Source of the DNA: Podarcis tiliguerta
Taxonomy: Eukaryota
Strand: one strand, 5' to 3'
NCBI GenBank assembly: GCA_965153285.1
Contig: OZ229120.1
Length of the DNA stretch: 64,000 nt
The notes beneath the pieces were generated by a model. It searched no databases. It had not been told where the DNA came from and was given only the letters and a program-made list of their open reading frames with translations. This document shows positions 4,215-57,060 of this stretch, piece by piece; within the stretch, counting starts at the first letter, position 1; every line of letters starts with the position of its first letter. Position numbers and translations under genes: made by a program.

Positions 4215-4966
4215 GTGAGCGCAGATTTTCTTCTGCCCAACAAGTCTGCCTGCTGACATCCGTGTTCTTGCTGTTGCCTCTTGGCTGGCTCTCTGCTGTG
4301 GTGCATGGCAGGAATTTTCTAGCTTCCGAGTGTCTGGCCTGTGTCCTCCCTGTTTATGCAGTTCCTTCTAAAATCCAAAATAGTTGGACAAAATAACAAT
4401 AATAAATTTATTAGATTTATATACCACCCTTCATCCGAAGAGCTCAGGGCAATTCACAAGCTAAAATAAAGCTGTGCCCAGTTATTGGTCTGACCTTGGC
4501 CACTGAAAAGTCTTGAGAGTTTCTGAAGCGGCTTCAGCAAAGCTCCAAGATATAAGGAAGTTCCAGGAGTGTAAGGCAGCCACACTTGGGAGCCTTGGAG
4601 ATTAAACTGAAGCAGCTCCATTTTGCTGTCAGCAATGAAAGCAGCTTGATTTCTTACAATTCAATGGAAGTTGAGCTTCATCGTTCTTCCAAGCAATGAG
4701 CAGCTTCCACACTTGACTCCTCGCAGTTCTTAACTCATAGCTAGTGTTTCTTATTGTGTGAAGCCTTTCCCAGTCCTTGGGGCCAGATCATGAAGATCAA
4801 GGAGGTGGCAGTGGAAATTTCTATTCTGCCCTGCTCTCCTGTCATCTCCTTGCTCTGCTGAAGTGCAGCTGGTGGGAGTCGTTTTCTTTCCACCAAATAC
4901 CATGTGCTGGCAAGGAGGAGTTTGAGATATTTACCCTCAGGTGAAACAACTCTGCTTTCTCTCCAG

Positions 4967-5066
4967 ATAAATTCAATACGTATGTGACCCTGAAGGTGCA
5001 AAATGTGAAGAGCACCACTGTTGCCGTTCGAGGGGACCAGCCATGCTGGGAACAAGACTTCCTCTT
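4967..5066 (+). CDS. UNC13B: UNC13B exon 3 (100 nt): [33 protein letters not shown](F), C2A domain
   Basis: ctccag acceptor, GTAAGT donor. Near-identical to Munc13 C2A, including K32 (homodimerisation residue). [10 protein letters not shown] is UNC13B-type; UNC13A has TTIAVRGSQP. Confidence 0.97.
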
Positions 5067-6443
5067 GTAAGTGAATGCTGTGGGTCAAGATCACACCTGA
5101 AAGTGGAGTGCCGGGTTGCTAAGTGTCAATTTTGTCCCTCAGCTATCTGGGGGCAATGAAGTTCCACCAGTTGAGTTACGGGAAAGCGAGTATTTATGTT
5201 AAATTCCATACAGGGAGGATAAGATGGGAGAAATTGGGAAATTAGGAACTTTAAACATGTTTTTTATCTTGGGAAAGAGACAAGAGAGGAAACACCATAT
5301 TGATAGGTTAAATTGAATGATCACTGTATTGAAAAAGTAATGCTGGGGGGGGGGTGTTTCAAAGATTGGATATGATTGTATTTATGGTATATGGTGTCCC
5401 TTTCCTTTCAAGAGCATTGTAAGTATTGTATTTCTTTTGAATGTTAATATTGTTGGTACTCTGAAGACTTTTTCTTTCCTTTGAGGTTTAAATACGTATT
5501 AAACTGTTGATATTGTTAATTTATAATTAAAACAAAAACACTGAAAGGAGAAGCATTTGCCTTTCTCTGTCTGTTTGTTGGGAAGTTGCAAAGGTGTTGC
5601 TTGAAAACACATGTTGCTTTTTGTAATACCTTGCCTGGGACTCTCCACACGGACATCATCCCCTTCCAAGAGCACAGGCTCTTAGGGAAGTATCCAGTGG
5701 AACAGATCTGCTAGCGTAGGGTATTTGGGCTGTGCAACAGAACTGCCCCTCCCTCCCTCCCTCGCCTCCCCCCTCCCACCCCGTAAATCTATTCTGGAGC
5801 AGATTGGGTGTGGGGTGGGGCGTAGAGAGATGAGAGGTGGTAGAAGCTGCATTGAACAAGCAGAAATTCTTGCACTAGCGGATCTGCTTCTTTGGATCCT
5901 GCCCTTGGTCTACTTAAAGGGGTGGTGATTCCTTGCAAATGTGCAAGCTTAGGTACAAAATAAGGGGCAGGGATGATCACAGGGGGAGAAAGGGGTCTGT
6001 CAGGACTGTGAACTTGGGTTTTGAAAGAAGTGGAGCAATCTGCTGTGGCTCAGGCTACCATGTAGCAGTGTCCTTTGTCAGAGGAAACTTTAAATTGTGC
6101 GTTGAGATTTGGCTGGAGGAGCATCTTGCAGTCAAGCCCAGCAGGCTTTGACTTGTGGTCCTGAATAGACCTCTAGTGGCCGAAAGGCATCTCTGCAGTT
6201 GTCTGGGCTGAGGCTGGCAGCCAGGGAGAGGCTGGTCATCCTCCTCCTGTCTGGGGGATCCCAGGAGATCCTCCTGTTGGTCTGGCTTGACCTGCAGCTG
6301 AAAGACGGTTGCTCTTCAGATTAAAACAGGGACAAGGCAGTCAGTTGGGAAGCAGTCAGAATGGACATTGTAAAAAAGGCGAAGGTGTGGGTCCAGTTTT
6401 CCCCCAGCTGCTTATGTGTTGTGTCTCTTTTCCTCCTTTGCAG

Positions 6444-6561
6444 CGAGATCAGCCGCCTGGACCTGGGCTTGATTGTGGAAGTATGGAACAAAGGGCTGAT
6501 CTGGGACACAATGGTTGGGACAGCGTGGATTGAGCTGAAGGCCATCCGGCAGTCGGATGAG
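6444..6561 (+). CDS. UNC13B: UNC13B exon 4 (118 nt): [39 protein letters not shown]
   Basis: ttgcag acceptor, GAG|GTCAGT donor; lies inside ORF 6361..6636. EISRL and IRQSDE are UNC13B-type. Confidence 0.97.
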
Positions 6562-7715
6562 GTCAGTAGACCTTCAGAGCCGAGAGAGATGCTCTTCAGC
6601 CCCCTGGGACTTCCGGGGTGTTTGGGGTGGCGGTGAAGAAATGGTGAAGAGCTTTCCTTGTGCCATTTGGTTGCGTCTGTCTAGTATCCAGCATGATGTT
6701 GGATCACAGTTGCCATCATCCCTGAGTGGCTGGGCTGATGGGATCTGCAGTCCGACAACATGTGGAGTCTTTCAGGCCCCTCTCTTCTTCCTCATCTGTA
6801 CTGAAGCAAAGGCTAGCATGGACTGCTCCTGTGACCCAGCCAGGAGATGAAAATGTTGCATGCTTCTTCCACGCAGCATTCTTGCATGACCCAGAAATTA
6901 TGGAATCCTTTTCTAAAGCTCCCATCACCTCTTGACTTCAGTCACAACTGATCCCGGCACAATGACCGTTTAAGGCATGCAAGGAAAAGTAATCTTACGC
7001 AACACTCTGAACTTTCTTCTAAGGCTATAAGTGGAAACGCTGCTGTTCATTTTTTTTTTTAAAAAAATAAAGGCCCGTGAATTAAAGCAGACCTCTTGGT
7101 TCTTCTTCTCAGAGCCCATTTAGGCCAAGAGGGTTTCTGTCGACTGCAGAGGATGGTTTGTCTCAAGCTCTGAGTCCGCAGGTGAAAGCCGTTCTGTAAT
7201 TCTGCCACAGCAAATGAGCAGGATTTTGTTCAGCGGCACACGGCTTGTTCTCTACAGTATACATATTTTGTTTTTAATAGATGATTTACTGCTTTGGGGG
7301 CATTTGGACTTCCAAAAAGCAGCAGTAAATAAATTGTAGCAGCAACAGCACTCTGGTGGTCTCTTTGACGTATTCTGTAGAAGCTTGAATTCCTCCAAAA
7401 GTTCAGACCATTTCCTGATGTGGTTTGGAGTTGCCATGTCAATTCCTTCTTGCAGGGGTCGGGGGACCTAGTCAGACGGTTTTGCAAATTGATTTGATGT
7501 ATTTTTAAAGTTTTTAATTTTAGATTTATTTTTTGTATGTGGCCACAGTTTTTTGTGATGTGTGTTTTATAAAATATCTAAATGCATGTTGTTGTGCCTT
7601 TCAGCACTTTGGGGGCTGCTTCATATGGGGCGATAAAATAACAGACGTGAGAAAAGTGGGAAGATGGATGGGGAGATATTTCTGGTGAAGTTGCTGATGC
7701 CCTTTCTCTTTCCAG

Positions 7716-7839
7716 GAGGGCCCTGGGGAGTGGTCCACCCTGGAAGCTGAGGTCTTGATGAAGGGCCATGAGGTCTGTGGCACCAAAAACCCAACACCTC
7801 ACCAGATTTTGTTGGATACAAGATTTGAGTTGCCTTTCG
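7716..7839 (+). CDS. UNC13B: UNC13B exon 5 (124 nt): [41 protein letters not shown]
   Basis: tttccag acceptor, G|GTGAGT donor. WSTLEAE and NPTPH are UNC13B-type. Phase 0 to 1. Confidence 0.97.
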
Positions 7840-10604
7840 GTGAGTGCAAATGACTTTCTGCCATCCCCCGTCATGCTCTGTGAAACTCAAAGACTCCTCT
7901 TCCCTCTTGCTGCCCTGATGTGGGCCCACCGTGAGGGTCTTTTCTTAGTGGTGGTTTCCTTCCAGGAGTTCGCTCCAATTAAATCAGGCTTACGGTGCTG
8001 TATATGGGAGGACAATTTTGAAGCCCTGAGGTTTTCTTGCAGCACAGCATTTTCCATAAGTGGGGTGTGTGTGTGCTTATTTCACATTGCCTAGCAACCA
8101 GTAATCTTTATTCAAAGTCATCAGACTGCTGAATGCAACTAATAGAAGGAAACTTGAAGGTCCTTTAGTCCAGCCCCTATTATACAGTTTCTGAATTTGT
8201 TTGTAAAGTATGATTGGTAATTCTGAACGGAGAAGTTTGCAAATAATGCAAGTAACAGTAGTATCCTTTTTGAGGAGGGCCAGTCCACTCTCTTCCTATT
8301 TGGGGGTTTGTCTGTGTCTGTGGAGGGGGGATGGGGCCTTTCAGGCAAACTTTGAGAGGGAGGGAGGGCACAAATTTGGCTTGTGTTTCTTCTGGGGAGG
8401 AGTCCTCTCTGCAGCCATTGTAACCCCCCCCCGAAAAAAAACCCATTTCAGGGATCAAACTGCAGGCCAAGAAATGCACCCTCCAAAGCAGCCTCACTGA
8501 GGCTGCCAACTTGGATGCCCGTTTTACTGGACTATTTCTTTGTACAGTGTAACGGCTGTTGCCACACAGGCTTTAGCTGGCATAGTTTGGCTCAAAAATG
8601 ATTCCTCTAGTGCGACATTCCTCGCTCTCTTAGCTGTTCAGAACGGTGCACAAGTTGTAAATAGTCTGAATTGTGTGCCTCCCCCTCCAGGAAAGGTTTC
8701 TGCTGTTTCAGGGGAGCCATATCTTCCAAGAAGATGCAATGATGCTTTTCAGATACTATTATAATTTCATGCTTAAAGAAATACAAGAAGGCTACTTCTG
8801 CTTAAGGAGTTTGAGAACCAGTGAATGCCGTGATGGGCTCTCCGGGGCAAAAAGTAGGGCCCTTTCCAGCCTCAGCATCCCAGGGCCATGTGCCTTTCAT
8901 GGTTCCTTGCAGGTGCAGGAATGACGTGCTCTCAGGATAAAGATTGCATCAGTATCGAAGGAGCTTTAGCGTTGTGGGTCCCTCCTTGGTCACTGTCCTT
9001 CCTTTTAACTTTGAGTATGAGATCACTTCTCTCTCTACAGCAGTATCCCACCATGCCCCCCCCGGGGGGGGGGGGAGAGATATATTTAGAAATCTTGTGT
9101 TTCATTTCCCAGGTGAAAGCGCCCCTCTCCTATGTGATAAAATGGACTTGGAAGAAGCGGTATACCTGTGTGTTTGGTTCAGCATGTTTATATTCATGGA
9201 GCGAGCTTTGGCTTCAGATGGCTTAAAAAGCTCTCCCACAAGCCATTTCCAAAGTTGCTCAAGGCTTTCTTTGATGACAGAGAGAATATAATGACCTGGT
9301 GTGGAGCTGTTGCATGTTTGTGGTGGTGTTTGCGAAACGAATTGTCTTATCTCGGATAAGATGCCCAGAAGCATGCTATGGGAATGGCTCCCTGAAGCCA
9401 GGATGTGACAGGCCCTTGGCAGTCCCCTGCCGCTCTGCCTGGGCAGTGCAAGACAGGGACACGTCTGAGGACAAGGTTTCCATCCCTTTTTGGAAGCAGA
9501 GTTCTTGACTGTGTCATTGGGCATGTCAGTAGTTAGCTCTCTTCTGGCTGGGGCTGGTGGGAGTTGTAGTCCGACGGATCTGGAGGCCTCCATCTTGGGG
9601 ATGACTGAGTTAGAGGTGCCTTGGTTAATGGGGACGGGGGGACATTTTGAAGCTCTGTGCAGTCCCAAACCTTCCTGTGGTCCTGCAGAGTGCAAGAGGT
9701 CTCTCCTGGCCCAGCACTCCGCTTCCCACTTAACCTGCCAGAGTTTTCTGGGAGATTTTCCAGACATGCCTGGTTCCATCACCTGCTTGAGGCACAGGCA
9801 TGCTTCCCCTTGGGCCGTGGATTTTGTGTTCTCCTCTTTTCATCTCCAGCCTCCCTGCCTTTCCTTTCCCCCCTTAATCAGAGTTCCAAACATTCTGGAA
9901 TTGGGAAAGCCAGCAAGAGACTTGACTTTTATGTTGCTGGATTTGTGATGTTTTCCGGGGTTTCCATTCAAAGAGACCTCTGGGCCACAGCTGTTTTTCT
10001 GCCTTGCCTCTGCAGTCGGTTGTGCTTTGCCGCCTCCTGTTTCTCAGTCTGATCTGAAAAGTGGGGAAAGTATGAAACATTAATTGAACCTAACTAGCGC
10101 TTGTTGACACCGTGCCTGCTGTTGCTGCCGCCCTCCTTGTTCTGACCCTCCTCTGCCTCCGCCCTTGGCCAGGAAGTCATGCTCCTCCTTCCCCTTGGCT
10201 CTTGGCAGTGTGCACCTGCCTCACCTGCTGACACAGTTCCCTTTCTGTAATCTGACTGTGCAGCTCGCAAGGGTCTGTCCACCATTCCTTCTGTTCTCAA
10301 TGAGCCCAAGAAAGCCGTGTTGTTTTTACAGCTGTGTGTGTGGTTTTTGTTTCTATTCTTAATTGAACCAGCATCCCTGGTCATGTGCTGTTCTGCGTAA
10401 GCATGCTCTGAATTTAAAAGTACATGCCTGGCCCTATGGATGTTCTGGGACGCCCAGTGCTGTGGCATGGTTGAGGCTGGGCAGCTGTGGAATTGGGTGG
10501 GAAGCTTCTGGGGCCCCCATGTCGGAGCAGAATATGCATATAATAAAATATATTTTGGGGAACGGGGATGGGAGCAGGCGCCTGCTTATTCTGCTGTCTT
10601 GCAG

Positions 10605-30238: not shown

Positions 30239-30461
30239 CTTTTGAAGACCACGATAGTGCTGTGGATGACAGAGACAGCGACTACCGCAGTGAGACCAGC
30301 AACAGCATTCCTCCCCAGTACCACACCACCTCGCAGCCCAATGCTTCGGTGCACCAGTTCCCTGTGGCTTCCCGCCTGCAGCAGCAGGGGGTCCCCCGAG
30401 AGTGCTGTGTGGAGTCCCTGCACGGCTATGATTTGGACTACCACGAACGAGCAGCCATCAG
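30239..30461 (+). CDS. UNC13B: UNC13B exon 8 (223 nt): [41 protein letters not shown]...[11 protein letters not shown]
   Basis: ttctag acceptor, AG|GTAGGT donor. Carries the conserved Munc13 [18 protein letters not shown] motif. Phase 1 to 2. Confidence 0.97.
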
Positions 30462-31043
30462 GTAGGTACCCCCTTGGAACCAGGGTGTTTTCTCTCCCCC
30501 AACCACAAATTTATTGGCAGGAGAAACTCACCGTAAGCTACCAAGACTGGGGCTGGCTGCTTCAGACTCTCTTGTGGTCAGGTATTTAAAAGAAAAGCCA
30601 TTCTGCTGCTTCAGGGGTGACAGAAGAGCAGTGAGCAACAGCTGCCAGACATGGTTCCCCCCACCCAGAATAGCCCAATGGGAGCAAAGAAAGGTTTGCA
30701 GCTGAGCCTCCTCCTTGCGAAGCAGAGCTGGGGTAAGCAGTTCTTTTTGCTGTGGAATTTTGAGACCCCCAGGCTGCCGCCCTGAGTGACCAAGAGTGAC
30801 TGACAATATGTGGATCAATTTCACTTGAGATTGCAAGGCGTGCTCCCCCTCAGGATGCCCCTCTTGCTGAGATTTGGCTTCTGTTGTCTCACACCCATCC
30901 AGACTCCTGCCATGATTGCGCAACCCCCAGTCCCACACGCCACACACTTGCTTTCACTTTCCATTTTATGATACTAAGCTGTTTGAACCTTCTGTGTTGC
31001 TCTTGTCCTTCACGTCTCCCAACGTCTCCTTGCCTTTTTGAAG

Positions 31044-31169
31044 AAGGCGCCATAGCTTAGACTCCACTGTGAGTGGCCGAACTGACCTGGAATCTGCATC
31101 ACAGTCAAGTCAAATGACAAGCCGCCAGCTGTCATTAGAGAGCCGCCACTCACTAGAGGTGTCTGATAG
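31044..31169 (+). CDS. UNC13B: Candidate 126-nt cassette exon (phase 2-2): (R)RRHSLDSTVSGRTDLESASQSSQMTSRQLSLESRHSLEVSD
   Basis: Long pyrimidine tract (~30990-31039), AAGAAG (NAGNAG) acceptor, AG|GTGGGT donor. Open in the frame required by exon 8; length divisible by 3; TGCATG downstream at 31256. Confidence 0.65.
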
Positions 31170-31811
31170 GTGGGTGACCCTCTCCGAAGCCTCTGTGTCC
31201 GTGTCTCGTGACGTGGCTTTGGTCTGCTGGGGTTCCTGGGCTGGCTATCAGTGTTTGCATGAATTCATCCTCTTCCAAGTATAGTTGCCGGCTGGCTGTT
31301 TTCTATTGCTTCTCTTGTTTCAACTGGGTTTTTGTTGCTGTTGACTTCCTCCTTAGGAAAAAGGTAGAACATTTGTATCAGACCTCTAAAGAGAAAAGTG
31401 ATGCAAATCTTTAGCTTTCCTCCAAACTTTAAAATCTTAGATCTGTCTAATTTATTCTCATATAATTACTTTGGTTTCTAATTGCCCTGTCAATATTGTA
31501 GCTGGAGTTTTTAGGATTCATGTTTCCAATTCTGACTTGCCCATCATAATCCTGTTTGTGCTGTCCATGTGGTTAATGGAAGTAACCCCAAATAATAATT
31601 GGAACGGTTCCTCATTTTGCGCCTTATCAACATGGTTGTTTTTTTAAAAATTTATTTACCTCTAGCGTTAACCACAAGAAAGATAATGGGTTTTTCCTGT
31701 TTTGTTGTTTTGTCACATTGCAAATTTAATTAATTGATGCCCTTTATTGTGTGCTTAGTGTAATAACTTATTATTAGTCTGTTGCAAATGCCCCTTCTTA
31801 AAATCAGGAGA

Positions 31812-32105: not shown

Positions 32106-32512
32106 TTGAGACGCTCCAGAAAGTGACTTGTAACATTTTAGGTAGCTGCTCGATTACATTTTTAATCTGCAATTCCTGTTCTTAACAGAAGTTTATAAAT
32201 AACGTACCATACATCACTTTATAGTATACATAACACTGGTATACATGTTTCATGCTCTCCTACCCTTACAACCCTACTATTTAGCTGCAATATTAGTAAA
32301 AGAGAGATTCCTAACATTTCACGTTAATAAATGGATTCATTGTTATGATATTTTAATATGCTTTCTGCATGTGATTCACGATATCATTTGGTCTTTATGA
32401 AATGCTCCTTTGCAAGTTTTGTGTTTAAAGCTCTTTTTTCACCCCTCCTGCTCTTTCCTTTTTTTCTCTGCCCTTCTGTCCTTCTTATATTTTCCCCCTC
32501 CACACGTATCAG

Positions 32513-35500
32513 ACCAGGATCTTTAGTTAGCAATGGGAAAGTCAGGATCATTCCATTTGATTATGAAGTTGGCCAAGAACAGGAAGAGTGCGAAGAGAAC
32601 TATGAGGAATTAGGCAAACAGTTAATAGAAGATTTTTTAGAAAAAAGTCACAGGACTAGAAGTTCACAGGGCCGAAAGAGCCCGAGGCTCTCGAAAAGGG
32701 AGAACTTTGGCCATCCTGAAAGAGCAAGATACTCACGGAAGGCTTGCCCAGAATCAGGACATCCCGATGTTCCTTGCTATCCAGAGGAATATGACACAAT
32801 AGACAGGAGAAGAAAGAAGAAGCTGAGATATAACAATTTTGAAGAATGCGAGCGAACTATACTGCAAAGCAGTAGTAACCGGAGATTTTCTTCAGGCAGC
32901 ATTAAAGCAAGAACTGAACATAACCTATATCCTGATTATGATGAAACTGAGAAATGGGGCAGCAGCCCCATTGAAAGTGAAGAACAGTTACCGGAATATC
33001 CAGTTCTGCGTCCGTACAAGAATGGCCTTCTAGTCAAAAGTGGCAACTTGTCTGCTAACCAACGCGCAAAGCATGACTCAGGATCAGTCCATTTTGATGG
33101 TGAAAATGAGATCCATTCAGAACAGCCAGCTCACTCTTTTGTGCCATTGGGTGCCCTTAAAGAGTTTGGCAGCTGTTCGTCCAGTGTACTCCTGTACTCC
33201 CCAGTTTCGGATGATGATGAAGAAATGGAAGAAATAGCAATACTTTCCCAGGCATGGCGTGAATCCAGCGTTCGCCATGTTGGAGACCTTACTGACGCCC
33301 GTACTGGAAGTGCCATATCCCTGTTACCAAGGGACAAAAACTCACATAGGATGAGAGGAGGAAAGCACGGCTTTCTTAAGCAAGACTTGACCCTCTCTCC
33401 TGTTGAAGAGCCAACGGAAGAATACGTGGACACAATGGATGAACTGCAGTGCTTAGTTGAAACTGTGTCTGAATACTTAGCTGAAAAAGAGGAGGAGATT
33501 AGCAAATTTGAAACCCTTCCTGCGAGCAAAAATGCAAGCGATGGTGCCTCTCCCAAACTGGCCAGTGCTGATAAGCTGGCGGAGGAAAGTGCCCCTTTGG
33601 AACAGGCGAAACCAGCCGCTTCTGCTGCAGAGGAGAGTGAGGGCAGCAAAGGCATAACAGAGGCACTGCCAGACTTGTCTGGGGTGAAGAACACGGTCAG
33701 CTCCTTATTTAGTTCTTTCACCGAAAAAGTGGGCTCAGGAACAAAGCACTTAACAGCCTCAGTTGAAAAACTTGTATCTCCCACACCAGAGAAACCTGAA
33801 GCCCCTGGTCAACCTGAGGGAGGCATCACAAGTCTGTTTTCAAGTAAGCCTAAGTCTGAGGGTGCCTCTCCAGAACCGAAAGCAGAAAGCAAATCGGATG
33901 CCAGGTTGCCCACTGCAACTTCCCCTTCTGTGACCCAGAGTAGCCGTGAGCGAGAAGCCGGTGATGCCAAGGCCAGCATCCCAGAAAAGACAGCGGGAGA
34001 CAACAAGGCTCTTCCAAGTGTCCAGGGTGCTTCAGCAAACGCTGCTCCGCCCCCTTCTCTGGACCCCAGCTCAGTTGTGAACTCCGTCTTAGGCATCTTC
34101 AACCCTTTGAAAATCTTCTCCGAAAAGGAAGCACCGAAAAAAGAGACTGCAAAACAAGAGGAGGCTGTGAAGGTGGAAGCCACGCATGCCTTGGCTTCTG
34201 AAGCCAAGGCAGGTGGGAAGGCAGCTGAAGGCAACGCGACAAAACCCACCAACGTTGCGCCTCCTGAAACGAGCAAGAGCGAGGCAGAAGCGAGCGCAAG
34301 CAGCGGCCCCGTCTCCTCCATCTTTGGCAAGCTGTCGAGCTCCGTTAGTTCTTTTAGCTTGAAAGCCAGTTTTGAGAGTCTGGCTGTTCCCAAGCAGCCA
34401 AGTGGGCCGCAGAAGGCTTTTGATGCGCTGCCGCAGGCCACAAGTCAGCCAGATAAAGTTGTTAAAGAACACCCAGACATGCCAAGAAATCCACAACCTG
34501 CAGGGAAAGTGCCAGAAAACAAGCCAAGTGAAGCCAAGAAGGAGACTGGTAACGCTCCGCCGTTGGAGCAGAGGGAACCATCTGAGAGCTTTTTCAATCC
34601 ACTTAAGAAATCCTTCAGCCAGTTGCTGCTCCCTTCTTCTGCTACTGAAACTGTGCCAAAGGAGCCACCACCGGGCTTGGGGAAAAGTCACCGTTCTGAA
34701 GATGATGTCAGGAAAACAAGCTCCGCAAGCAGCGAACCCAACTTCCCTTTCACCGGTAAGCTCCAGATTCCCTTTTTGAGCGGTTTTGGTTTTTCAGACA
34801 AACCACCGCAGGACAACAAAGAGAAGCCAGGAATTTTCACTTCCTTCTTGAAAGCTGCTTCTGTGGAAAACCTGACAGCTTCAAAAGATCAAACTGCCCC
34901 ACCAAGTTTTAGTGGCAAGCCACCAAATGCTGAAGAGGGTCACAAAAGCAGCAACACGGAAGCTGCCAAAATGGACCCGTCAAAGTCTCAGGCAGTTCCC
35001 GAGGCACCGCAGAGAAAAGAGGAGCCGACGAGGAAGAAAGAACCCAGTAAAGAAGTTGGTCTGGGTGCACCAAAACGTGGAGATAAAGACCAGGGTGCCT
35101 CAGACACTTCAAAAATTGCACACATGGATCATGATACCAAACGCATGGGTGCTCTGGACCACAAGGATTCCAAATGCAGGGGGGAGCCGGCAGCCCCCAC
35201 AAAAGAACCTGACTTAAATACGACAGCAGGAAAGCCAGTGCTTCCTGGTGGAATCAGAGAAGACCAGGTAATGGATGATGCTCAGAGGAAGGCCCCACAG
35301 CCAGGGCAGGGATTGCTCTCGGGCCTCTTCCGGCGGGCGTCTTCAGACCACATAACCCACACGGAAGAGTCGAGTGCTAAAAATGAAACGGACAGCCAGA
35401 AGAGCAGATCAGCTGGCTTACTTTCTGGATTATTTAGGTTTGCTTCAAGTGAAAACCTGACCGAAAGTGTGCCAGATAAGGCAAAATCAGGCTCTCTGGG

Positions 35501-38500
35501 CATAATGAAGTTTTTTGAGAGGAGCGAAGAGCCTAGTTCTGGTGACAAGTCCGTTGGCTCACATGTGACTTCCGGTCCCCAAGAAAGCACTGGGGGGAAA
35601 CCGGAGACGGGCAGCTTCATAAAGAACTTCATGCAGAGGCCTAAAGAAAAAGCGGAGGAGGCAGTGACCGAGACTGCGAAGGCGAATGGTCATTTGCCTC
35701 ACCCAGAACTGAGCAAAATGGACAACGGACATGGTCCCGTCCCTTGGCACCCCCCCTCTCAGAATGCTTTAAGATCACAGCCAAAGATACAAGACTTATC
35801 GGGGCAGCCAACTCTTTATAGACAACCTACGGATTCCAATATTTATCAAGCAGTTCTCAACGAAAGGTCAAATGAATTTCTCAATTCCTCTTTGCTGAAT
35901 GCTAAATTGTATGGCCACTCAGAGCAGCATCTTGCTCTTGAGGAAACAAGGAGCCACTCTAGCTTTGACTGGGAATATGATGCAGGAGCATTTTCTCTCA
36001 ATGCCCACCAGGTTTCCTTGCCCGTTTACTACGTCTTGCAGCAGAATTCTGTCCCACTGGCTGAGTTTCTGGAATGGCCAGACTCCAGTGATGCCGTAGT
36101 GAACTTGTGTAAAAAAGATGGCAATGCCAATGTTGTGGATTGGAGGTCAAATGCCAATTTTGATGCCCTGAGCATGGATTTCAGTGTCATGTCACACGAA
36201 TCGTTTGATCAGTTAGACTTACAAGATTTAGGTCTAGAAGAAACTGAAATGTGGGCAACGCATTCTCTGAATGGAAACCTTCCTCCATTTGATGACTGCA
36301 GCTATATTTTGGAAGAGATGCCCATGGACTTAAGCTATTCGTCGGCATGTGATGGCAATATGTGGACCTTAATTGATCAGGAGTCCTTGAGCCTGGAAGG
36401 CAGTTTTGTCTATTCATCTTATAGCCAGGAGTACCAGGACTGGCTGATGCTGCTTGAGAAGGGCGTCTGGTGGCCATCGGAAGAGGGCGATTGTGGATAT
36501 TACATGTACAGGGACGGTCAGTTTGTTTATTCCCTGCTCACCGACCCCACTGGGCAGTATGTCTACATTTGCACTCCTGACACTTACACCTACCCAGACT
36601 ACTGGGATTATAATTATCCGCAGAGCATTTTGCAGAGCACTGTCTTGGAAGATGACATGATTGCCGTTTGCGGTTTCAAAGTGCCTCTTAGTAATGAAGA
36701 CGAGTTATTCTGGTTTGCTGAAGAGGAGCAATTGGATAATTACTCTGTAAACAAACCACTTGATTTGTCTGTAGCTCTGCAGAGAAGTGATCAACTTATG
36801 AACATGAATTTAGAGACCTTTTCGCAGATGTTTGAGGAGTCCATTTATTACCAGAGAGAGCAGCCTTTAGACTTTTCAGGGTACAAACTTCAAAAACTCA
36901 AAGTAGACTTTAGGCCTGAGAATGACATGGAGTGGCACACAGAAGAGCCTCCCCTGACCCTTGACCTTAGAGTTCACTCCAGGGTGGCTTCCAGTGGGAG
37001 GCTAAAAGATGATGCTCTGCCCAAACATCCGGACAGGACCCCTGCTGTGACAGTTTCTGAAAGTGCACAGTCAAAACGGTTTGGTTTCCATATATTCCAG
37101 TCTTCTGCTAAGCCTGAGCCTTCATCGGCATCTCAGAGTGTTACAGAAGTCAAAACCACTGAAGAAGATAAAAAGCCACCTCTGAATAAAGTCGCATCTT
37201 TATTCTCTGCTTTGGGTGGCCTGATGGGTAAGGGTACGGAAGCGCATGAGACAGTGGAAGATGCGGCTGTGAAGAAAGGAGAACCGGCGGTGTTGGGACA
37301 CAAAAACGATGCTCTTCCAGCTTCGCCACCCAGGAAAACAGGAGAGGATATGCAAAACCAGCAGCACACGGAGCATGAACAAGAGAGAAAAGAGAGAGGC
37401 AGATTAGTTAAGTCCGTTAGGGATGAAAAGCCAGTGATTTCTCAGAAAAAGCCTCCGCTGGTGAGGTCTTCCTCTCAGCTCAGCCAGGGTCCCATGGACA
37501 GCAGGACCAGTCAGCTGGATAAAAGTGTTAAGCCTGCTCCCCTCCCAAGTCAACAAAAACCCAAAGTGGGTGAGGATGAACCCAAGAAAACCCAGCCAGC
37601 CCCCAGCCAAGCACCCGCGGAGGCTGAGGGCACGTTGTTTAAAAGTGCTCTCAAGATTCTCAGCCTGGGAGAAGACTCCTCCACACCTGCAGCACCCAAT
37701 AAAAGTCAAGGCCCCGGGTTCTTTGATTTCTTTAAAACGCAGGTCAACAAAGCCCCACAGCCACCGCCAGCACCCCAGCCAAATCTGACGAAAAATGAAG
37801 CCGAGAAGAAAATGCCTCAGGAGAAAGTGGAGCCCCCAGGCATTTCATCATTCTTTGGTTCCATAGGGGATCTTTTCAAAGTCGATGCAGCCCCTGCCCC
37901 ACCAAGTGCCGCTGCTCCACCAAAGAGTGGAACCCCCACCTCCCTGAAACCGAATGACAACGCGGACCAGCGTAGCCGAGAGCCAAGTAAGAGCAGCACT
38001 CCTGCTCCTCGAATCCCCGTGGAGCAGGCTCGTGGGAACGCTGCCCAGAAGGCCGCAGTCCCCAAGGAAGAACAGCATGGGAAAGTAGGCAAGGAAGCTG
38101 CTCCAGTGAAGAAGGAGGACATCCCCACCGCAGGGAATGCAGAACCCAAGCCTCCCATGCAGGCAGGCCCTCGAATGGACCAAGCAAATCGCTCTCCAGG
38201 GCAGCATGGCCACGGACCAGCTGTTGCACCGGGACCGCAAGGCCATGCAGGAGCCATGCCTGGTAAAACTCAGCCAGGAAAAGCCAGTCAGCCACCCAGG
38301 GATTCTGGGTTTAGCCTGCCTTTTGGCTTATCTCAGGCAGCACCTTCGAAGCCTCCGCAGGCCCCGCAGCCGGCTGGCAAGAGCATCTTCTCCTCCTTCT
38401 TCGGTGCCCCAGAGAAAGCCCCTGCCCCTGCTCCAGCAGCTCCTAATGCCAAGCCCCCGGAAGGAGAGGGTCTGTTCAAGATGCCTTCTTTCTTTTCCGG

Positions 38501-41402
38501 AGGGCCCACCACAAAGAAGAACGTGCCTCAGAGCAGCTCCAGCTTCAGCTTTTTCAACCTGACCTCCTTCCTGGATGACAAACCACCGGCAGCTGCTCCT
38601 GACAAGGGGAATATTGCAAAGCCACCTCAGCAGCAGGCAAGCACCCTGGGAAGGCCGCCTCAACAGCAAGCAGACGCAAAGCCTTCTATGAAGCAGTGTG
38701 TTTCTGTTGACTCTGGCATTGGACTTGCCAGACAGCAGGGCTTGAAGGATAAAGAGGCAGCGGCGGGTGTTATAGAAGCAGTACTTGGAAAGCAAGAGGC
38801 TGTTGGTCCGGAGCACAAGGCAAGTGAGTTAAAAACTCCTGCGGCTGAGCATGCTGCGGCAAGTGCTTCAGAAGTGAAAAATGAGGTAGAGATACCTTTT
38901 GTGGCCAGTAAACCTCCTGATGATGGTACAGATAGAGAAGACCACTCAGTCTATTCTGATCCTGGCTCTCAGGTCCCTACGCTGCAGGAAGACATTGCAC
39001 CTTCCCTTCCGGAGATTCCACAACCAGAGGAGCAGCTGCAAGACAATGCAGAAAAGAGTGGTGGTATTGTGGTGTCCTCTGAGAAGGAATTTGTTCCTTT
39101 AGTTGAGAACGAGACTTTTGAAAAGGCAGAGCCCGCTCCAGTTTGTGATGAGACCTCTGTGGCTCTTGAGCCATCTCCTGCTCCTGGAGACCTTTCACAG
39201 GAGGTTGTACCTGAAGAAAAACCAAGCGCCCCTGAAGTCAAGCCCCCGGAGCCCAAGCAACCTGATAGGACCCCAAATACTGAAGTCAAGCCCCCGGAGC
39301 TCAAGCAACCTGATAGGACCCCAAATACTGCAGGAGAGCAGCAGGCTCAGGGCCAGAGGCCTCTCCCTCAAATGGCAGCAGCAACACCTAACCTGCAGGA
39401 GAAACCTAAAGAGCCTGAGGCTGACAAATCAGTTCTAGATTCCTCCGTTGAAATGTTTTCCAGCTTCATGACGAAGATGAAACCAACCAAAACATTATCT
39501 GGCTTCTTTTCCCAGCCTCAGACTCCAGCAGCTCCTAGTGCCCAAAAGAAGAGCACTTCGTTTTTCGGCCTTTCCTCCCTGCCCACTGGGCCTCCTCCAG
39601 CATTTACAAGTGATCTCTTTGGCATTTTTAAAGGAGCAACAGACGAGACCCTTTCAAAGCCTGCAGGGAAGACCGCAGGCACTTCAAAACCCCAGGAAAT
39701 GAGCTCCAGGGCAAAGGAGGCCGTGGGCCCAGTTCCTGGTAAAGGTCTCGCAAAACAAGATAAAGCCTCTAGGGACGAACTTTTAGGGACAAATGCCGGC
39801 AGCGTTTTGAAACAACCGGACCAAACCTCTAGGGCTGAACCTACAGAGAAAGAAGCTAGCAGTGACTTGAAACAAGATGCCCCTTCTGCTTTAGCAGATG
39901 AGAGTTTGGGGAAAGAATGTAGGGCAGAATTGGAAGCTGAAAGCAGTGGAAGACCTGAACATGGTCTGGAACCCTCCCTTAATGCTTCAGAAACTTTAGA
40001 CTCAAGTAGGGATCAGGGCCCTGAAGTGGTGCAGCTGGACACAAACTTACTGGCATCTGATGAAGCAGGGAAGGCTGCCCCGTGTAGTCCAGAGGTACAT
40101 GATGCAGTTGAGACGGTGGTGCTGCAGGAGAAGAGTGAAGTGCCTGTGGAGCCCTTAGAAAATGATGCTGTCCCTGCTGTTGAAGAGCAAGTGAGCCCGG
40201 CAGGAGAAACAGACGTTGGCCAAATGGATTTGGAGAGTACACGTGAGCTGGAACCCAAGGTTGGTGAGGCAGATGAACACCCGAAACTGCCAGAACTGAC
40301 GGATACTTCACTAACCACTGAAGAAGTAACTACAAAGAATGAGGCAGATGTTGATATTTGCCCACCAGACACGTTTGAGACCCTGGAGATGGAACCCAAA
40401 GCTGCTGCAGATGAGGCCCATGACTTGCCCCATCAGGATATAGAAAAGGTCCCTGAAATAAAATCTGATCTTCCTCCTGAGCAGAAAGAGCCTCTAACCA
40501 TCAGCGAAGCAGCCCCAGAAGCTGCTCCCTTGAAAAGCAGTTTGGCTGGTAAGAGCAAGCCAGCCGGTGCTCCTACAGAGGCCAGCGGCACCAAGCCCAT
40601 GTTTGAAATTCCAAGCATGCCCACTTTGCCCAAATTCGGCTTCATGTCTTCTGCAGACAGCAGCAAGCCATTTGGCTCCTTCTTCTCTGCACAGCCGCCT
40701 TCGGCAAGCAAGCCTGCGCCTGAGCCAGGCCTCGTGTCCAGCTTCAACAAGTTTTCCTCAAGTCTGTTTGGTGGAGGAAGTGATGAGAAAGCAGGTAAAG
40801 TAGAGGGCACTCCGGCTGCTGTGTTTGGAAAGAAGCTGGACTTCTCATTTCCGTGGCAGAAAGATGCCAAGGAGGCAAGTCTCAAGAAGGAACCAGATGT
40901 GCCAACACCAAAAGCTTCCTCCAAACAGGAGGTGGCCCCAATTGCTTCATCCAAACTGGATTTGAAGGCACCAGAAGCTGTCTCAAAAGCCGAGGAACAA
41001 GCAGTGGATGTGACCGGGGCTGATGGGAGCCCAAACCTCTCTGCCTCTGACCAGCCAGCTGACAGTGCTGCTGATTCAGACCTTTCTTCTAAGCAGCCCG
41101 ACAGCAAGAGCAACGAATGCTTCGATGGTCCCACACCTGACATTCCAGTTGCGCCCAACAAGGAGCTGGAGCTTGAGGTCTCCAGAGAAACGGAAGATGA
41201 GCCAAGCACCATTTCCAGTGAGCCTCCTGGGCTCCCTGAAGAGGAACCAGCAGAAGGTGCCACACAGGTTCAGGATGAAGTAGAGCAGAAGGAAAGTGTC
41301 CCTTGTCCAGAAACGGAAACACTTGCTACTGGACTGCAGCCGGCGGAGCAGAGTAGCCCTGAGCCACTCAGGAAGAAAAGGCCAGTAGCCAAAACAGCAT
41401 GA
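32513..41402 (+). CDS. UNC13B: Giant in-frame exon of UNC13B (~2,960 codons, mostly low-complexity/disordered). Either a cassette exon 32513-41380 using a GC donor, or a terminal exon ending at TGA 41400-41402.
   Basis: 9-kb uninterrupted ORF (32358..41402). An ~80-nt AG-free pyrimidine tract ends in the AG at 32511-32512, giving phase-2 entry in frame with exon 8 (AG|A CCA GGA = RPG). The ORF's first 51 codons are intronic. Confidence 0.9.
39232..39327 (+). repeat. 48-bp in-frame tandem duplication inside the giant exon (EVKPPE[P/L]KQPDRTPNT x2)
   Basis: Two copies, 39232-39279 and 39280-39327, with one mismatch. Confidence 0.95.
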
Positions 41403-42834: not shown

Positions 42835-43458
42835 GTATTGTTGAATTAACAGCTCCTGGTGCAGTAACTCCAACCTTATAATAATCAGTCACTCCCAAGC
42901 AGCGACAGCAATGGGCCCATGTTGTGCTGGAAGACAGGGCTGATTTTTCTAAACGGCAGCCACAACAGGATCCATTCTCAGCCGCTGGAGAAACTTAAGA
43001 ATGTGCTAATGAAATGGGAGTAAAGATGAAACCCTCATGTCCCAGAATCCACGTGCAGTTGACATGCTAGGGGCAAACGTCGTAAGAAGGTGTTGAGCTT
43101 AGCAGCTTAGAGGTTCAATGTGCACGGAACTTTTGCTGCCTTTCTTAATTTTCCTATGGCCTGTAAACAGTTTACAGGATGCGCAGCAGATGATGCTATC
43201 TGTTCCTGATTGATATATCAATAGGGTCCAGAGGCTTAGGCCCAGCACAAAAATTGCAAACACAAACTTGGAAGTGGCGGGCGACTGAGAACAGTGGCTG
43301 CAGTGTGCAAGAGACATTTGCTTGGCTAGAGTTTCCATTTGATGCTTTGGCCTGGTGTAGTTAGGATTTGCACTCTCTCTCTCTCTGCGTGTGCATGCAT
43401 TGTGCTGTTTCCTGGTTGCCAAGACCTTTGGACTTACTAATGCCTTGCTCTCTCACAG

Positions 43459-43758
43459 TCCTGCCAGCAGTAGTAAGTTTGGTTCCTCCTGTAACATCAG
43501 CCAGGGAAGCTCTCAGCTGAGTGAGCTGGACCAGTATCACGGGAGTGTGCCCTGCTCCGAACACGAGGACGAGCTCGCAGAAGGGGTGCCCGCTGCTCCT
43601 CCTCCTCCTCCCCCGACAGAGGGCCCTGCGCCATCTAGCGAGCAGCATGAGCCCCAGGAAGTGCACAGGGAAGGAGAGGGGAAGGTGAAAGAGCATGCCA
43701 CACCTCAACTACCTCCTGAAGCGGACGAGCCCAAAGAAGCCACGAAGACACCGGGCAG
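43459..43758 (+). CDS. UNC13B: UNC13B exon 9 (300 nt, phase 2-2): (S)[27 protein letters not shown]...TKTPG
   Basis: Branch point TACTAAT (43435-43441), cacag acceptor, AG|GTAGGT donor; matches mammalian [28 protein letters not shown]. Confidence 0.95.
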
Positions 43759-44211: not shown

Positions 44212-44302
44212 TCACCTTGACGAAAACGAACTTCTCCTGCTTCCCGCCGCAAGAGCCCGCTGGATCCGAGCCATTAATAAAGTGCGGCTTCAGTTTGAAG
44301 AG
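44212..44302 (+). CDS. UNC13B: UNC13B exon 10 (91 nt, phase 2-0): (S)HLDENELLLLPAARARWIRAINKVRLQFEE, calmodulin-binding helix
   Basis: T-rich tract with AAG acceptor, GAG|GTAGGG donor. WIRAINKVRLQ matches the Munc13-1/ubMunc13-2 CaM-binding motif with its anchor Trp. Confidence 0.93.
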
Positions 44303-47300
44303 GTAGGGCCTGTGAACGTGTCCCTTCCCCCATCCTTCCACCTGTGTCTGCTCTTGTAAACCTTGCCGTGACTTTTGTCTGAAGGTCGCTTTGCTTGTCT
44401 AAGGGAGACACCGTCCTGGGACAGCTGCACAAACGGTGCGTGTGCCTCTCTGGTACCAACAACTTGCTGAAGTTGACCGTGGTGACCTTAATTTGTTGAC
44501 CTCAAGGCAGAGGGGTGCAGAACTTGTGCCCCACCAGATTTTGTTGGACTCTCTCCTCAGCCCCAACAGGGCTGGGATTGGGGTGAAGTTGGAGCTCAGC
44601 GACATCTGGGGGCACCAAGTTGGCTACCTGTGTTGTGTAGAAGAACCAGAATTATTTATGGAAGTGTTGCATTGACATCACTGTTCCGTTGTGTCTGTAG
44701 TTTGTCTTCTGAGGCCCTTCTCTATGTTCCCTCCCCAAAAGGTTCGGAGGGTGACAACACAAGAAAGGGCCTTTTTTGGTGTGGCTCCCCGTTCGTGGAA
44801 TGCTCTCCCCAGATGCTTTCCCAACCCGTTGTGGGTGTGTGGGAGAGGAGACCCTTCCATGAACTACTGTGCTGCTCCTGGCGGCCTCCCGATTTCACTC
44901 CAGAGAGCACCCAGAAGCCGAGTGTTGTCTGAACAGGCCGGAGCAGAGAGTGGCAGCAGGTTCCCTCTCTGCCCCGTGTTGTTGTTGACTTGTGTCATTT
45001 GGATGCTGCCCTGGCCAGCGGAAGGCCATTGATGTGCCCCGGATCAAAATAGGCTCATGTTTGCAACCTTGTCGTTTTAGATGGATCAGAATTTACACAA
45101 TGTCACCGGGCTTAGCATTGCAACTGTGTTGTTGAGGTATCACAAAAGGGTCCTTAGCAGCAATGATATTTTTCATGGAAAAGGGAAATCTGAGCTTAAT
45201 GTGGGGAAAATACAGGGTGGCAGTTTTAGGGGATTCTGCAAAATAAGACCACGCAAAAGGAGCACCTATCTAACACTGATGTCAGGCTTTCTTAGCAGTT
45301 TCTCACACAGGGCAGAAACTGTGTTTTGCTACAGAGAGTATCAAAACACTTTTGTAATTCTTAAGCAAGTCAGAAGCCTGTTGAGTTGAATTAAAAGATC
45401 CTGACGGGTGTAAGAAATGTGAGATATTTACAAAAAGCCGTCAACCCAAGAGCTTTAACAGAACAACCCGGCGAGTTTGTCTGTCTTCTGAAAAATGCTG
45501 CTTTGAATCATTTAGTGAATTGTTTTGAAAAGTAAAACTCTCAAGAGCACTGGAGGCTTCTGCGCACAAAGAGAATTGGTGGTGTGTGAACGACAAGCGG
45601 CTCTTGATGGCTGCAAGCAGACCCCTCGTGCCTTCAAGTGCCTCCCTCCGTCTGCTTTCTTGTGGGCCAGAGAAACTGGCAGGATGCGCCGTGGAAAGCT
45701 TTTGCCATTGCGAGATGCTGCACTGGCGTCTCTCCAGAAGCACCAAGGTTTTCTCTTGATGCGTCTCCTGGGAGCGGGAGATAGGAGTACAAACTTGTCT
45801 GCTGTGAGCAGGAAGGTTCCTTGCGCGCCTGTCAAGATGGGTACATTAACTCTTTTTCATTATTCTGGCTTGTGCTTGTGTCGTGCTTCACTATTCATGG
45901 AAGAGAGTTGTATTCAGTAGCAGCAACTATAAGATGGGTATCCCCCTTTGCATCTTCTATAACCTTTTTTGGAAACTCTTATAGTTGCAATACTCATCCT
46001 CAGTTGTATCCATTGCAGAGCTGTTGAGGATAGCAAATTATCGTCCCAACTGGAATTTGGTTCCAGTGGAAATAGCATGTTTCAATAACGGACCTGGTGG
46101 AGTAGGCTCCATTCCTGAAATCATTTGACCCAAACTGGAGCCTGGCAATTCAGCCCTGCCCTCGCACATGTGTGCGACCCACATGGTCTGTGTCATCAGG
46201 CAAATCAAAGGTTTGGAACATGGATGCCTTCTTTTGCTTTGGGCAGAGTCTGCCTCCCCTGTGTGGGCCTTGGACACTCTTGAAATGCAAAGGTGCACAC
46301 TGGTTAAAGGGTGAATTTTCCACATTTTGGGGTTCTCCTCTGTTGCAAATGAACCTTAACCAGTCCTGGGTCAAATCGGGACTTGAAAGCTGTGGATGTT
46401 TGGCTGAAATCTTAATCCTTTCACACCAGATACGCTTGGAGTTCAGGCAAGCAAGCCAGACTGTGAATTTTGCTCTGCTGCGTTTGTCAGCAGCTGGTAC
46501 CGCAGCTGTTGTGTGTGGAAAGCAAAACGGACAAGGAGAGCCTTGTGTGTCTTGTAGATTTAAGTACTATGAAGCGAAAGGCTGGTCAGAGACACCTGTC
46601 TGTCTTGGAGTTGCAGGTTCCTGTGTGGGGCTACTGGTGTGGAAACATTACATCTCGGGGGCAAAATAACAAATATGTTTCACATAGCGTAGAAAAGACA
46701 ATACATATGTAGTATTATTCTAAAAGTGTTATGTGGCATATACTTTTGACATCCCTTTAAAAAAGCTGTTTACATTTCCATATGAGATTATAGTCCTTTT
46801 TGTGTGTGTGTGTGGGGGGGTGTATTTACACGCATTAACTCCTGGCGTAGTAGCTTGAATATTGGCAAAGTCTGCATGTTGTCCTTAATAAAGTTTTTGA
46901 CACTTATATCCAGGTTGATGAATTTTCATAGGGCTTTCTGGGTAAATTGAAAGTGAATCCATCTGGAATGAGAGTCAGGAGAGAATTATATGTCAATAGC
47001 CAGGCTTATTAAATTGATACAAATGAATCGTGTCTTACCTTCTTGTTGTTGGCAAAGGAGGACCATTTTGGAAATCCTTGTAATGTTATGTGGAGGTAGC
47101 AATGTGTATTCTCTGGGGAACTGATGGGGATCTTCTGATCTGGATTGCAGTGAGGGGCCAGATCACATTTTACTAGAAGTTGCAGAAGGGGAGCTGCGAG
47201 GGCCCCCTAGGATTTGCTTTAGCAACCCAAGGCAGAGGGCTCCTCCTCTAGAAACCCTCCCGTCTTGGCAGACAAGATAAACATACACATACTAGTTCTT

Positions 47301-56860: not shown

Positions 56861-57060
56861 NNNNNNNNNNNNNNNNNNNNNNNNNNNNNNNNNNNNNNNN
56901 NNNNNNNNNNNNNNNNNNNNNNNNNNNNNNNNNNNNNNNNNNNNNNNNNNNNNNNNNNNNNNNNNNNNNNNNNNNNNNNNNNNNNNNNNNNNNNNNNNNN
57001 NNNNNNNNNNNNNNNNNNNNNNNNNNNNNNNNNNNNNNNNNNNNNNNNNNNNNNNNNNNN
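56861..57060. other. Assembly gap (200 N, fixed-size placeholder)
   Basis: Run of exactly 200 N. Confidence 0.99.

Follow-up and report, generated by a model that had tools for sequence, protein, structure and literature searches.

The 64,000-nucleotide stretch of Podarcis tiliguerta DNA analysed here (the window; contig OZ229120.1 of assembly GCA_965153285.1) carries exons of UNC13B, the gene for Munc13-2. One of them is a giant alternative exon with a cluster of PxDLS-like motifs in its centre. A sequence-only reading of the window had proposed that this cluster could tether Munc13-2 to CtBP1 or to the ribbon protein RIBEYE. All positions below are those of the window, and amino acid (aa) numbers are those of the exon's reading frame.

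Translation of the window gave a single open frame of 3014 codons (32358-41402, + strand). A splice acceptor (cag before A, at 32510-32512) sets the start of the giant exon at 32513. Its frame closes at a TGA (41400-41402), and a possible GC donor lies about 20 nucleotides before the stop. When the long UNC13B isoforms of Zootoca, Varanus and Aquila were compared with the window by tblastn, the giant exon was recovered at about 32484-41399. The same comparison placed small exons at 10604, 12089 and 30241-30462, and exons downstream of the giant exon at 43457-43741 and 44213-44305. The two main features of the gene are the following.

4963-7838, + strand: upstream exons coding for the C2A domain of ubMunc13-2 (tblastn; Pfam C2 at the N-terminus of the long orthologues).
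32513-41402, + strand: giant alternative exon of UNC13B, linker of ubMunc13-2 (splice acceptor, open frame, tblastn of long isoforms, gnathostome orthologues).

Since the C2A exons define the N-terminus that is joined to the giant exon, the latter is a linker insert placed after the RIM-binding C2A domain of ubMunc13-2. The protein closest to the exon centre was the Zootoca vivipara "protein unc-13 homolog B isoform X1" (95% identical), which points to a lacertid lizard as the origin of the window. Orthologues named UNC13B have the C2 (PF00168), C1 (PF00130) and Munc13 (PF06292) domains around the same giant exon. Together, the upstream C2A exons and the domains of the orthologues confirm that the host gene is UNC13B (Munc13-2) and that the isoform is the ubiquitous one with C2A. 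Pfam found no domains in the whole giant-exon frame, nor in its central module when this was searched alone. All searches were made with the giant exon on its own rather than with a spliced multi-exon model, and the aligned orthologues are non-human protein matches.

Among the matched proteins, the giant exon was seen only in predicted database isoforms. Many of them stop at the in-frame TGA and so consist of C2A and the giant exon without MUN (about 2800-3300 residues, for example 3208 aa in Zootoca X1 and 3181 aa in zebra finch X2). Other isoforms splice on into C1, C2B and MUN and reach about 4150-4660 residues in tetrapods and more in some teleosts. Logan contigs of 10-18 kb also carry the giant exon. 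At 31042-31185 the eagle isoform aligned a 48-residue segment with 69% identity, which the Zootoca isoform skips; a small alternative exon probably lies here, shortly before the giant one. In the intron region downstream, 56861-57060 consists of 200 N, either an assembly gap or a mask.

The four main motifs belong to a conserved central module of the exon, and a small beta domain lies between the first two of them. The confidence of the AlphaFold2 models is given as the predicted local distance difference test (pLDDT).

36303-36977, + strand: conserved central module (aa 1316-1540) with four PxDLS-class motifs and a small beta domain (alignments, near-fixed spacing).
36321-36335, + strand: motif 1, PMDLS (aa 1322), canonical PxDLS (regular-expression scan, alignments; AlphaFold2 coil with pLDDT <30).
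36423-36689, + strand: small aromatic-rich domain of a helix and a beta-sheet (aa 1356-1444), between motifs 1 and 2 (AlphaFold2, fish-inclusive alignment A4).
36756-36770, + strand: motif 2, PLDLS (aa 1467), canonical PxDLS (regular-expression scan, alignments; AlphaFold2 pLDDT 30-40).
36864-36878, + strand: motif 3, PLDFS (aa 1503), variant with F at position 4 (regular-expression scan, alignments, AlphaFold2).
36957-36971, + strand: motif 4, TLDLR (aa 1534), variant without proline (regular-expression scan, alignments).

The sequence-only reading had named nine peptides, these four and five weaker candidates, and a regular-expression scan of the translation found all of them in frame at their coordinates. 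The canonical CtBP-ligand pattern, as in ELM, is P-[LVIPME]-[DENS]-[LM]-[VASTRG]. It is matched by PMDLS and PLDLS, and not by PLDFS, because of the F at position 4, or by TLDLR, which has no P. The strict form P[LVIM]DL[ST] was seen twice, where shuffles of the whole frame give 0.03 expected occurrences (p ~6e-4) and shuffles of the central 371 aa give 0.007. The broad ELM-style pattern was seen twice in the whole frame against about 1.3 expected, which is not significant. Since the broad pattern is at chance level over the whole frame, the case rests on conservation. There is no second CtBP motif of the RRT type in the giant-exon frame.

The orthologues were searched with aa 1130-1560 of the frame. 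We found the giant exon in lizards, snakes, turtles, birds, marsupials, placentals, frogs and axolotl, either in long UNC13B isoforms or in models named "uncharacterized". Tetrapod alignments were made with 27 and then with 46 sequences. In the latter, 12 of the 20 core-motif residues were invariant, compared to 17 of the 351 other positions (Fisher p = 3.8e-10). When the 2942 pentamers of the exon were ranked by conservation (Zootoca coordinates), PLDFS came 1st, PLDLS 6th, TLDLR 48th and PMDLS 50th. The tetrapod consensus is P-[MIV]-D-L-S followed by x-S-S for motif 1, P-L-D-L-S for motif 2, Q-P-L-D-F-S for motif 3 and [TI]-L-D-L-R for motif 4.

The exhaustive phmmer search of 1.8 billion representatives returned 65 relatives, and the names of their clusters were all UNC13B. 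Besides teleost unc13bb and a second group of teleosts, they cover sturgeon, bowfin and the catshark Scyliorhinus torazame, which has PMDLS, PLDLS, PLDFS and F-D-L-R at the four sites. The presence of the module in these fishes dates it to the gnathostome ancestor. Since the protein is kept from shark to mammal, a non-coding frame was ruled out. The sequence-only reading had made its proposal depend on conservation in orthologues, and the four main motifs proved to be conservation islands back to the cartilaginous fish.

Substitutions were counted in 89 gnathostome sequences (46 tetrapods and 43 fishes). Motif 1 fits the canonical pattern in 45 of the 46 tetrapods and in 22 of the 43 fishes. 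It is kept as P-x-D-L-[TRS] in sturgeon, bowfin, catshark and one teleost paralogue group, the fish forms being PVDLT, PMDLT, PIDLT and PVDLR. Motif 2, P-[LVMIE]-[DN]-L-[ST], fits the pattern in 86/89 sequences: the first position is P in 88, the second is L, V, M, I or E, the third is D in 84 and N in 5, the fourth is L in all 89, and the fifth is S in 71 and T in 16. Motif 3, P-[LV]-D-F-[ST], has F in 83/89 and never fits the canonical pattern. Motif 4, [AT]-x-D-L-[RTS], lacks the proline, its D is invariant and its L is present in 83/89. The teleost paralogue groups differ (orthologues P0128-P0149 and P0143-P0169). The unc13bb group has lost motif 1 and the proline of motif 3 and retained motif 2 as A-P-L-D-L-S, while the other group has retained G-P-x-D-L-T at motif 1.

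Taken over the motifs, the second position varies freely (L, V, M, I, E, K), the third takes D or N, the fourth L, and the fifth S, T or R. The variants PIDLS, PVDLT, PINLT, PEDLT and PVDLR all lie within the canonical CtBP pattern. The free position 2, the D/N alternation and the S/T/R at position 5 match the known degeneracy of CtBP ligands, and this is the strongest indirect argument that the module may bind CtBP. The spacing is conserved as well. Motif 2 is followed by motif 3 after 36 residues in 79 of 94 sequences, and motif 3 by motif 4 after 29-31 residues. From motif 1 it is about 145 residues downstream to motif 2 and 42-47 residues to the W-W-P of the beta domain.

The weaker candidates of the sequence-only reading fared differently and were mostly not conserved.

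35787-35801, + strand: IQDLS (in-frame regular-expression match).
36096-36116, + strand: VVNLCKK island, N-L-C-x-K-D core kept in tetrapods, PxDLS pattern not fitted.
36132-36146, + strand: VVDWR (in-frame regular-expression match).
36171-36185, + strand: SMDFS (in-frame regular-expression match).
36210-36224, + strand: QLDLQ (in-frame regular-expression match).

IQDLS is kept only in sauropsids. The mean column identity of SMDFS, VVDWR and QLDLQ is 0.54-0.67, compared to a regional mean of 0.65; the SMDFS site reads S-[LI]-D-L-S in birds and turtles and is lost in mammals. VVNLCKK forms a conserved island in tetrapods, N-L-C-[KQ]-K-D, which is not PxDLS-like. An additional PGDLS at 39183-39197 showed no conservation across the orthologues.

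The giant exon has other conserved islands too, and several of the Ser/Gly/Phe type are among its top conserved pentamers. At 33432-33500 (aa 359-381) lies an acidic, helix-like island of 23 residues, T-M-D-E-L-Q-C-L-V-E-T-V-S-E-Y-L-A-E-K-E-E-E-I, with a tetrapod conservation equal to that of the PxDLS motifs; it is also present in the fish consensus. A conserved Ser/Phe-rich amphipathic island, S-L-F-S-S-x-T-E-K-V-G-S-G-T-K..., is found at 33702-33776 (aa 449-473). Near the 3' end of the exon, at 40824-40862 (aa 2823-2835), there is a second L-D-F-S island, F-G-K-K-L-D-F-S-F-P-W-Q-K, which is conserved in tetrapods and of which fishes retain only the F-G-x-K ... F-P-W-Q-K frame. E-S-F-D-Q-L at 36198-36215 (aa 1281-1286), kept in most tetrapods, resembles an LC3-interacting acidic aromatic motif, and this is a resemblance only.

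The structural context of the motifs was modelled with AlphaFold2 in two runs. The first, with a tetrapod-only alignment of 46 sequences, gave a mean pLDDT of 32, no fold, and coil at all four motifs. The second covered aa 1345-1545 with the trimmed fish-inclusive alignment (A4, 35 sequences) and gave a mean pLDDT of 55. Here the small domain appeared as a helix and a four-stranded sheet (aa 1356-1409, pLDDT 66-80) with a further strand at aa 1439-1443. Its sequence, W-W-P-S-E-D-G-D ... Y-S-L-L-T-D ... G-Q-Y-V-Y, is kept from shark to mammal. Another strand, at aa 1509-1515 (36882-36902, pLDDT ~74), lies directly past motif 3. Motifs 1, 2 and 4 have a pLDDT <50 in these models from shallow alignments (motif 1 was covered by the first run), with a weak bridge at the L-D of motif 4 in the second run. 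The model of the beta domain had no convincing fold match (Foldseek E >=0.67; VIA-align Z <=3.3), and the module had no sequence match in the PDB, no Pfam family and no usable match in the ESM Atlas. We read motifs 1 and 2, and probably also motif 4, as exposed linear motifs that flank a small novel domain in the predicted structure. For motif 3 a partly structural role is possible, in which its F may pack against the beta domain. Since the motif adjoins a strand and keeps the F, it is not confidently counted as a CtBP site.

Judged from the sequence, we consider it an even call that at least motifs 1 and 2 dock proteins of the CtBP family. The centre of the giant UNC13B exon would then be a largely disordered docking module as old as the gnathostomes, in which the canonical PMDLS and PLDLS and the variants PLDFS and TLDLR are held at near-fixed spacing around the small beta domain. 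The motifs would add a beta-strand in the PxDLS-binding cleft, as those of E1A, RAI2 and Piccolino do, and so recruit CtBP-family proteins multivalently. Candidate partners would be CtBP1 and CtBP2, including the B domain of RIBEYE, which is identical to CtBP2. In this way, the giant Munc13-2 isoform, which bears the RIM-binding C2A domain, could be coupled to CtBP1 at active zones or to RIBEYE at ribbons. Since ALDLS of RAI2 binds CtBP without a proline, via its central LDL, a contribution of motif 4 is plausible.

Several points weigh against such docking. Only two of the four motifs are canonical, motifs 3 and 4 being outside the CtBP pattern. The F of motif 3 has been fixed for about 450 million years and adjoins a strand with a pLDDT of 74, which suggests a structural role. 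Free linear motifs seldom lie in a stretch of about 190 residues that is nearly free of indels, and this could reflect a domain that folds alone or on binding. The shallow alignments (46 and 35 sequences) make the label "disordered" insecure. Furthermore, most known PxDLS proteins are nuclear. Of the proposed CtBP/RIBEYE tether, the gene identity, the conservation and the CtBP-like degeneracy have thus held, whereas two of its motifs turned out to be non-canonical and one of these, PLDFS, is maybe structural.

The strongest alternative is that the conserved islands belong to a domain which is built around the small beta sheet through intramolecular strand additions and folds either by itself or upon binding, or that they dock a different partner, so that the likeness to PxDLS is incidental. 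We hold this to be a serious possibility, somewhat short of an even chance. The helix and four-stranded sheet were modelled with moderate confidence, a strand follows motif 3, a weak bridge forms at motif 4, and the spacing is nearly free of indels from shark to mammal. Motif 3 has an F where the canonical CtBP pattern allows none, and this and the additional tetrapod-conserved K-L-D-F-S island near the 3' end of the exon point the same way. However, motifs 1 and 2 are in segments with a pLDDT <40, and the module matches no known fold or family. Moreover, the second position admits E and K, whereas the other four are fixed, and such a pattern marks the solvent-exposed x of a bound PxDLS strand, not a core strand.

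A narrower form of the CtBP docking is a Piccolino-like role, with the module as a specific link via RIBEYE between synaptic ribbons and the giant Munc13-2 isoform. The B domain of RIBEYE is essentially CtBP2 and its PxDLS sites are accessible in ribbon assemblies. ubMunc13-2 is reported to be the sole Munc13 of rod photoreceptors, and the giant exon is joined to just this C2A-bearing ub N-terminus. Nevertheless, the ubMunc13-2 of rod ribbon synapses was assumed to be about 190 kDa and was located at the ribbon base, not along the ribbon. The loss of Munc13-2 causes only a slight defect in the electroretinogram, and CtBP1 at conventional synapses or in non-neuronal secretory cells would be an equally good partner. 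We therefore regard a specific ribbon tether as unlikely.

More speculative still, and in our opinion a long shot, is that the giant ubMunc13-2 isoform works as a vesicle tether anchored by CtBP or RIBEYE. C2A would hold RIM, the PxDLS cluster would clamp RIBEYE B domains or CtBP1 tetramers, and the two disordered arms of about 1200-1500 residues would capture vesicles. Whether the MUN priming engine is attached would depend on whether the exon is read through or spliced at its 3' end. If true, the filaments by which vesicles are held on ribbons and at active zones, and whose molecules have yet to be identified, would have a candidate in this isoform.

Finally, that the motifs are functionless chance matches in a long low-complexity open frame is hardly credible and was rejected on the conservation analysis: although the broad pattern is expected about 1.3 times at this size and composition, the motif residues are invariant across gnathostomes and among the best-conserved pentamers of the exon.

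The priming of vesicles for release is the task of Munc13 proteins, and the presynaptic cytomatrix and the ribbons are built from CtBP1 and RIBEYE, which sense NAD(H). Our literature search found no paper that links Munc13-2 with CtBP1, none that joins Unc13b, RIBEYE and mass spectrometry, and no description of the giant UNC13B exon. The search for PxDF[ST] peptides gave no relevant match (polymer and acronym matches only), and the supplements of two CtBP proteome papers contained nothing on UNC13B. The UNC13B module is thus a new candidate of the known PxDLS class in an unexpected host, a priming factor, and in an undescribed giant isoform, where it would act by the CtBP recruitment proposed above. 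A PxDLS cluster that is the best-conserved feature of an exon of about 2940 residues, and that has been kept since the gnathostome ancestor, offers a concrete hypothesis, cheap to test, in which a priming factor and scaffolds of the CtBP family are physically connected. It also draws attention to a Munc13-2 isoform of about 450-500 kDa, which may have escaped studies by antibody, knockout or proteomics that started from the 190 kDa form.

Classical PxDLS examples are PLDLS of adenovirus E1A, the motifs of ZEB, Knirps and RIP140, and PIDLR of Pc2. Like the canonical CtBP ligands E1A, ZEB, Knirps and RIP140, motifs 1 and 2 of UNC13B fit the pattern. Unlike them, their host is a cytoplasmic or presynaptic protein and not a transcription factor. 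At conventional synapses, the active-zone scaffolds Bassoon and Piccolo recruit CtBP1 via a PxDLS-type site, and they use single sites in contrast to the motif cluster of UNC13B.

In RAI2, two non-canonical ALDLS motifs are separated by 21 residues. The affinity of each for CtBP is about 5 uM, with the central L-D-L strand making the contact, and in tandem they polymerise CtBP tetramers. Motif 4 of UNC13B, [AT]-L-D-L-[RTS], resembles ALDLS, a non-proline x-L-D-L-S variant in an intrinsically disordered region of RAI2. With at least two sites per chain, UNC13B would by analogy be multivalent towards the tetrameric CtBP. RAI2 differs in being nuclear, in having two identical motifs, and in that its binding and filament structure have been solved. 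Mutants of the CtBP cleft have been described (PMC10760060).

The nearest presynaptic comparison is Piccolino, the ribbon isoform of Piccolo, which binds the B domain of RIBEYE via a conserved PVDLT and further PxDLS motifs in a C-terminal array. According to a 2026 preprint, Piccolino has seven motifs separated by alternating spacers of about 25 and 45 residues, and the number of motifs drives the assembly of B-domain filaments. Both are presynaptic proteins with several PxDLS-class motifs in a stretch conserved in vertebrates, which in UNC13B is likely to be disordered, as it is in Piccolino. As in Piccolino, at least three motifs (2, 3 and 4) follow each other on one chain with short spacers, two of the four UNC13B motifs being canonical, and the spacers of 36 and 29-31 residues are in the range of those of Piccolino and of the 21 residues of RAI2. 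Piccolino, with its seven motifs, demonstrated binding and ribbon shaping, differs from the UNC13B module, a candidate array in which two canonical and two variant motifs surround a small folded domain. Moreover, Piccolino is a scaffold, whereas the host of the UNC13B module is a priming factor.

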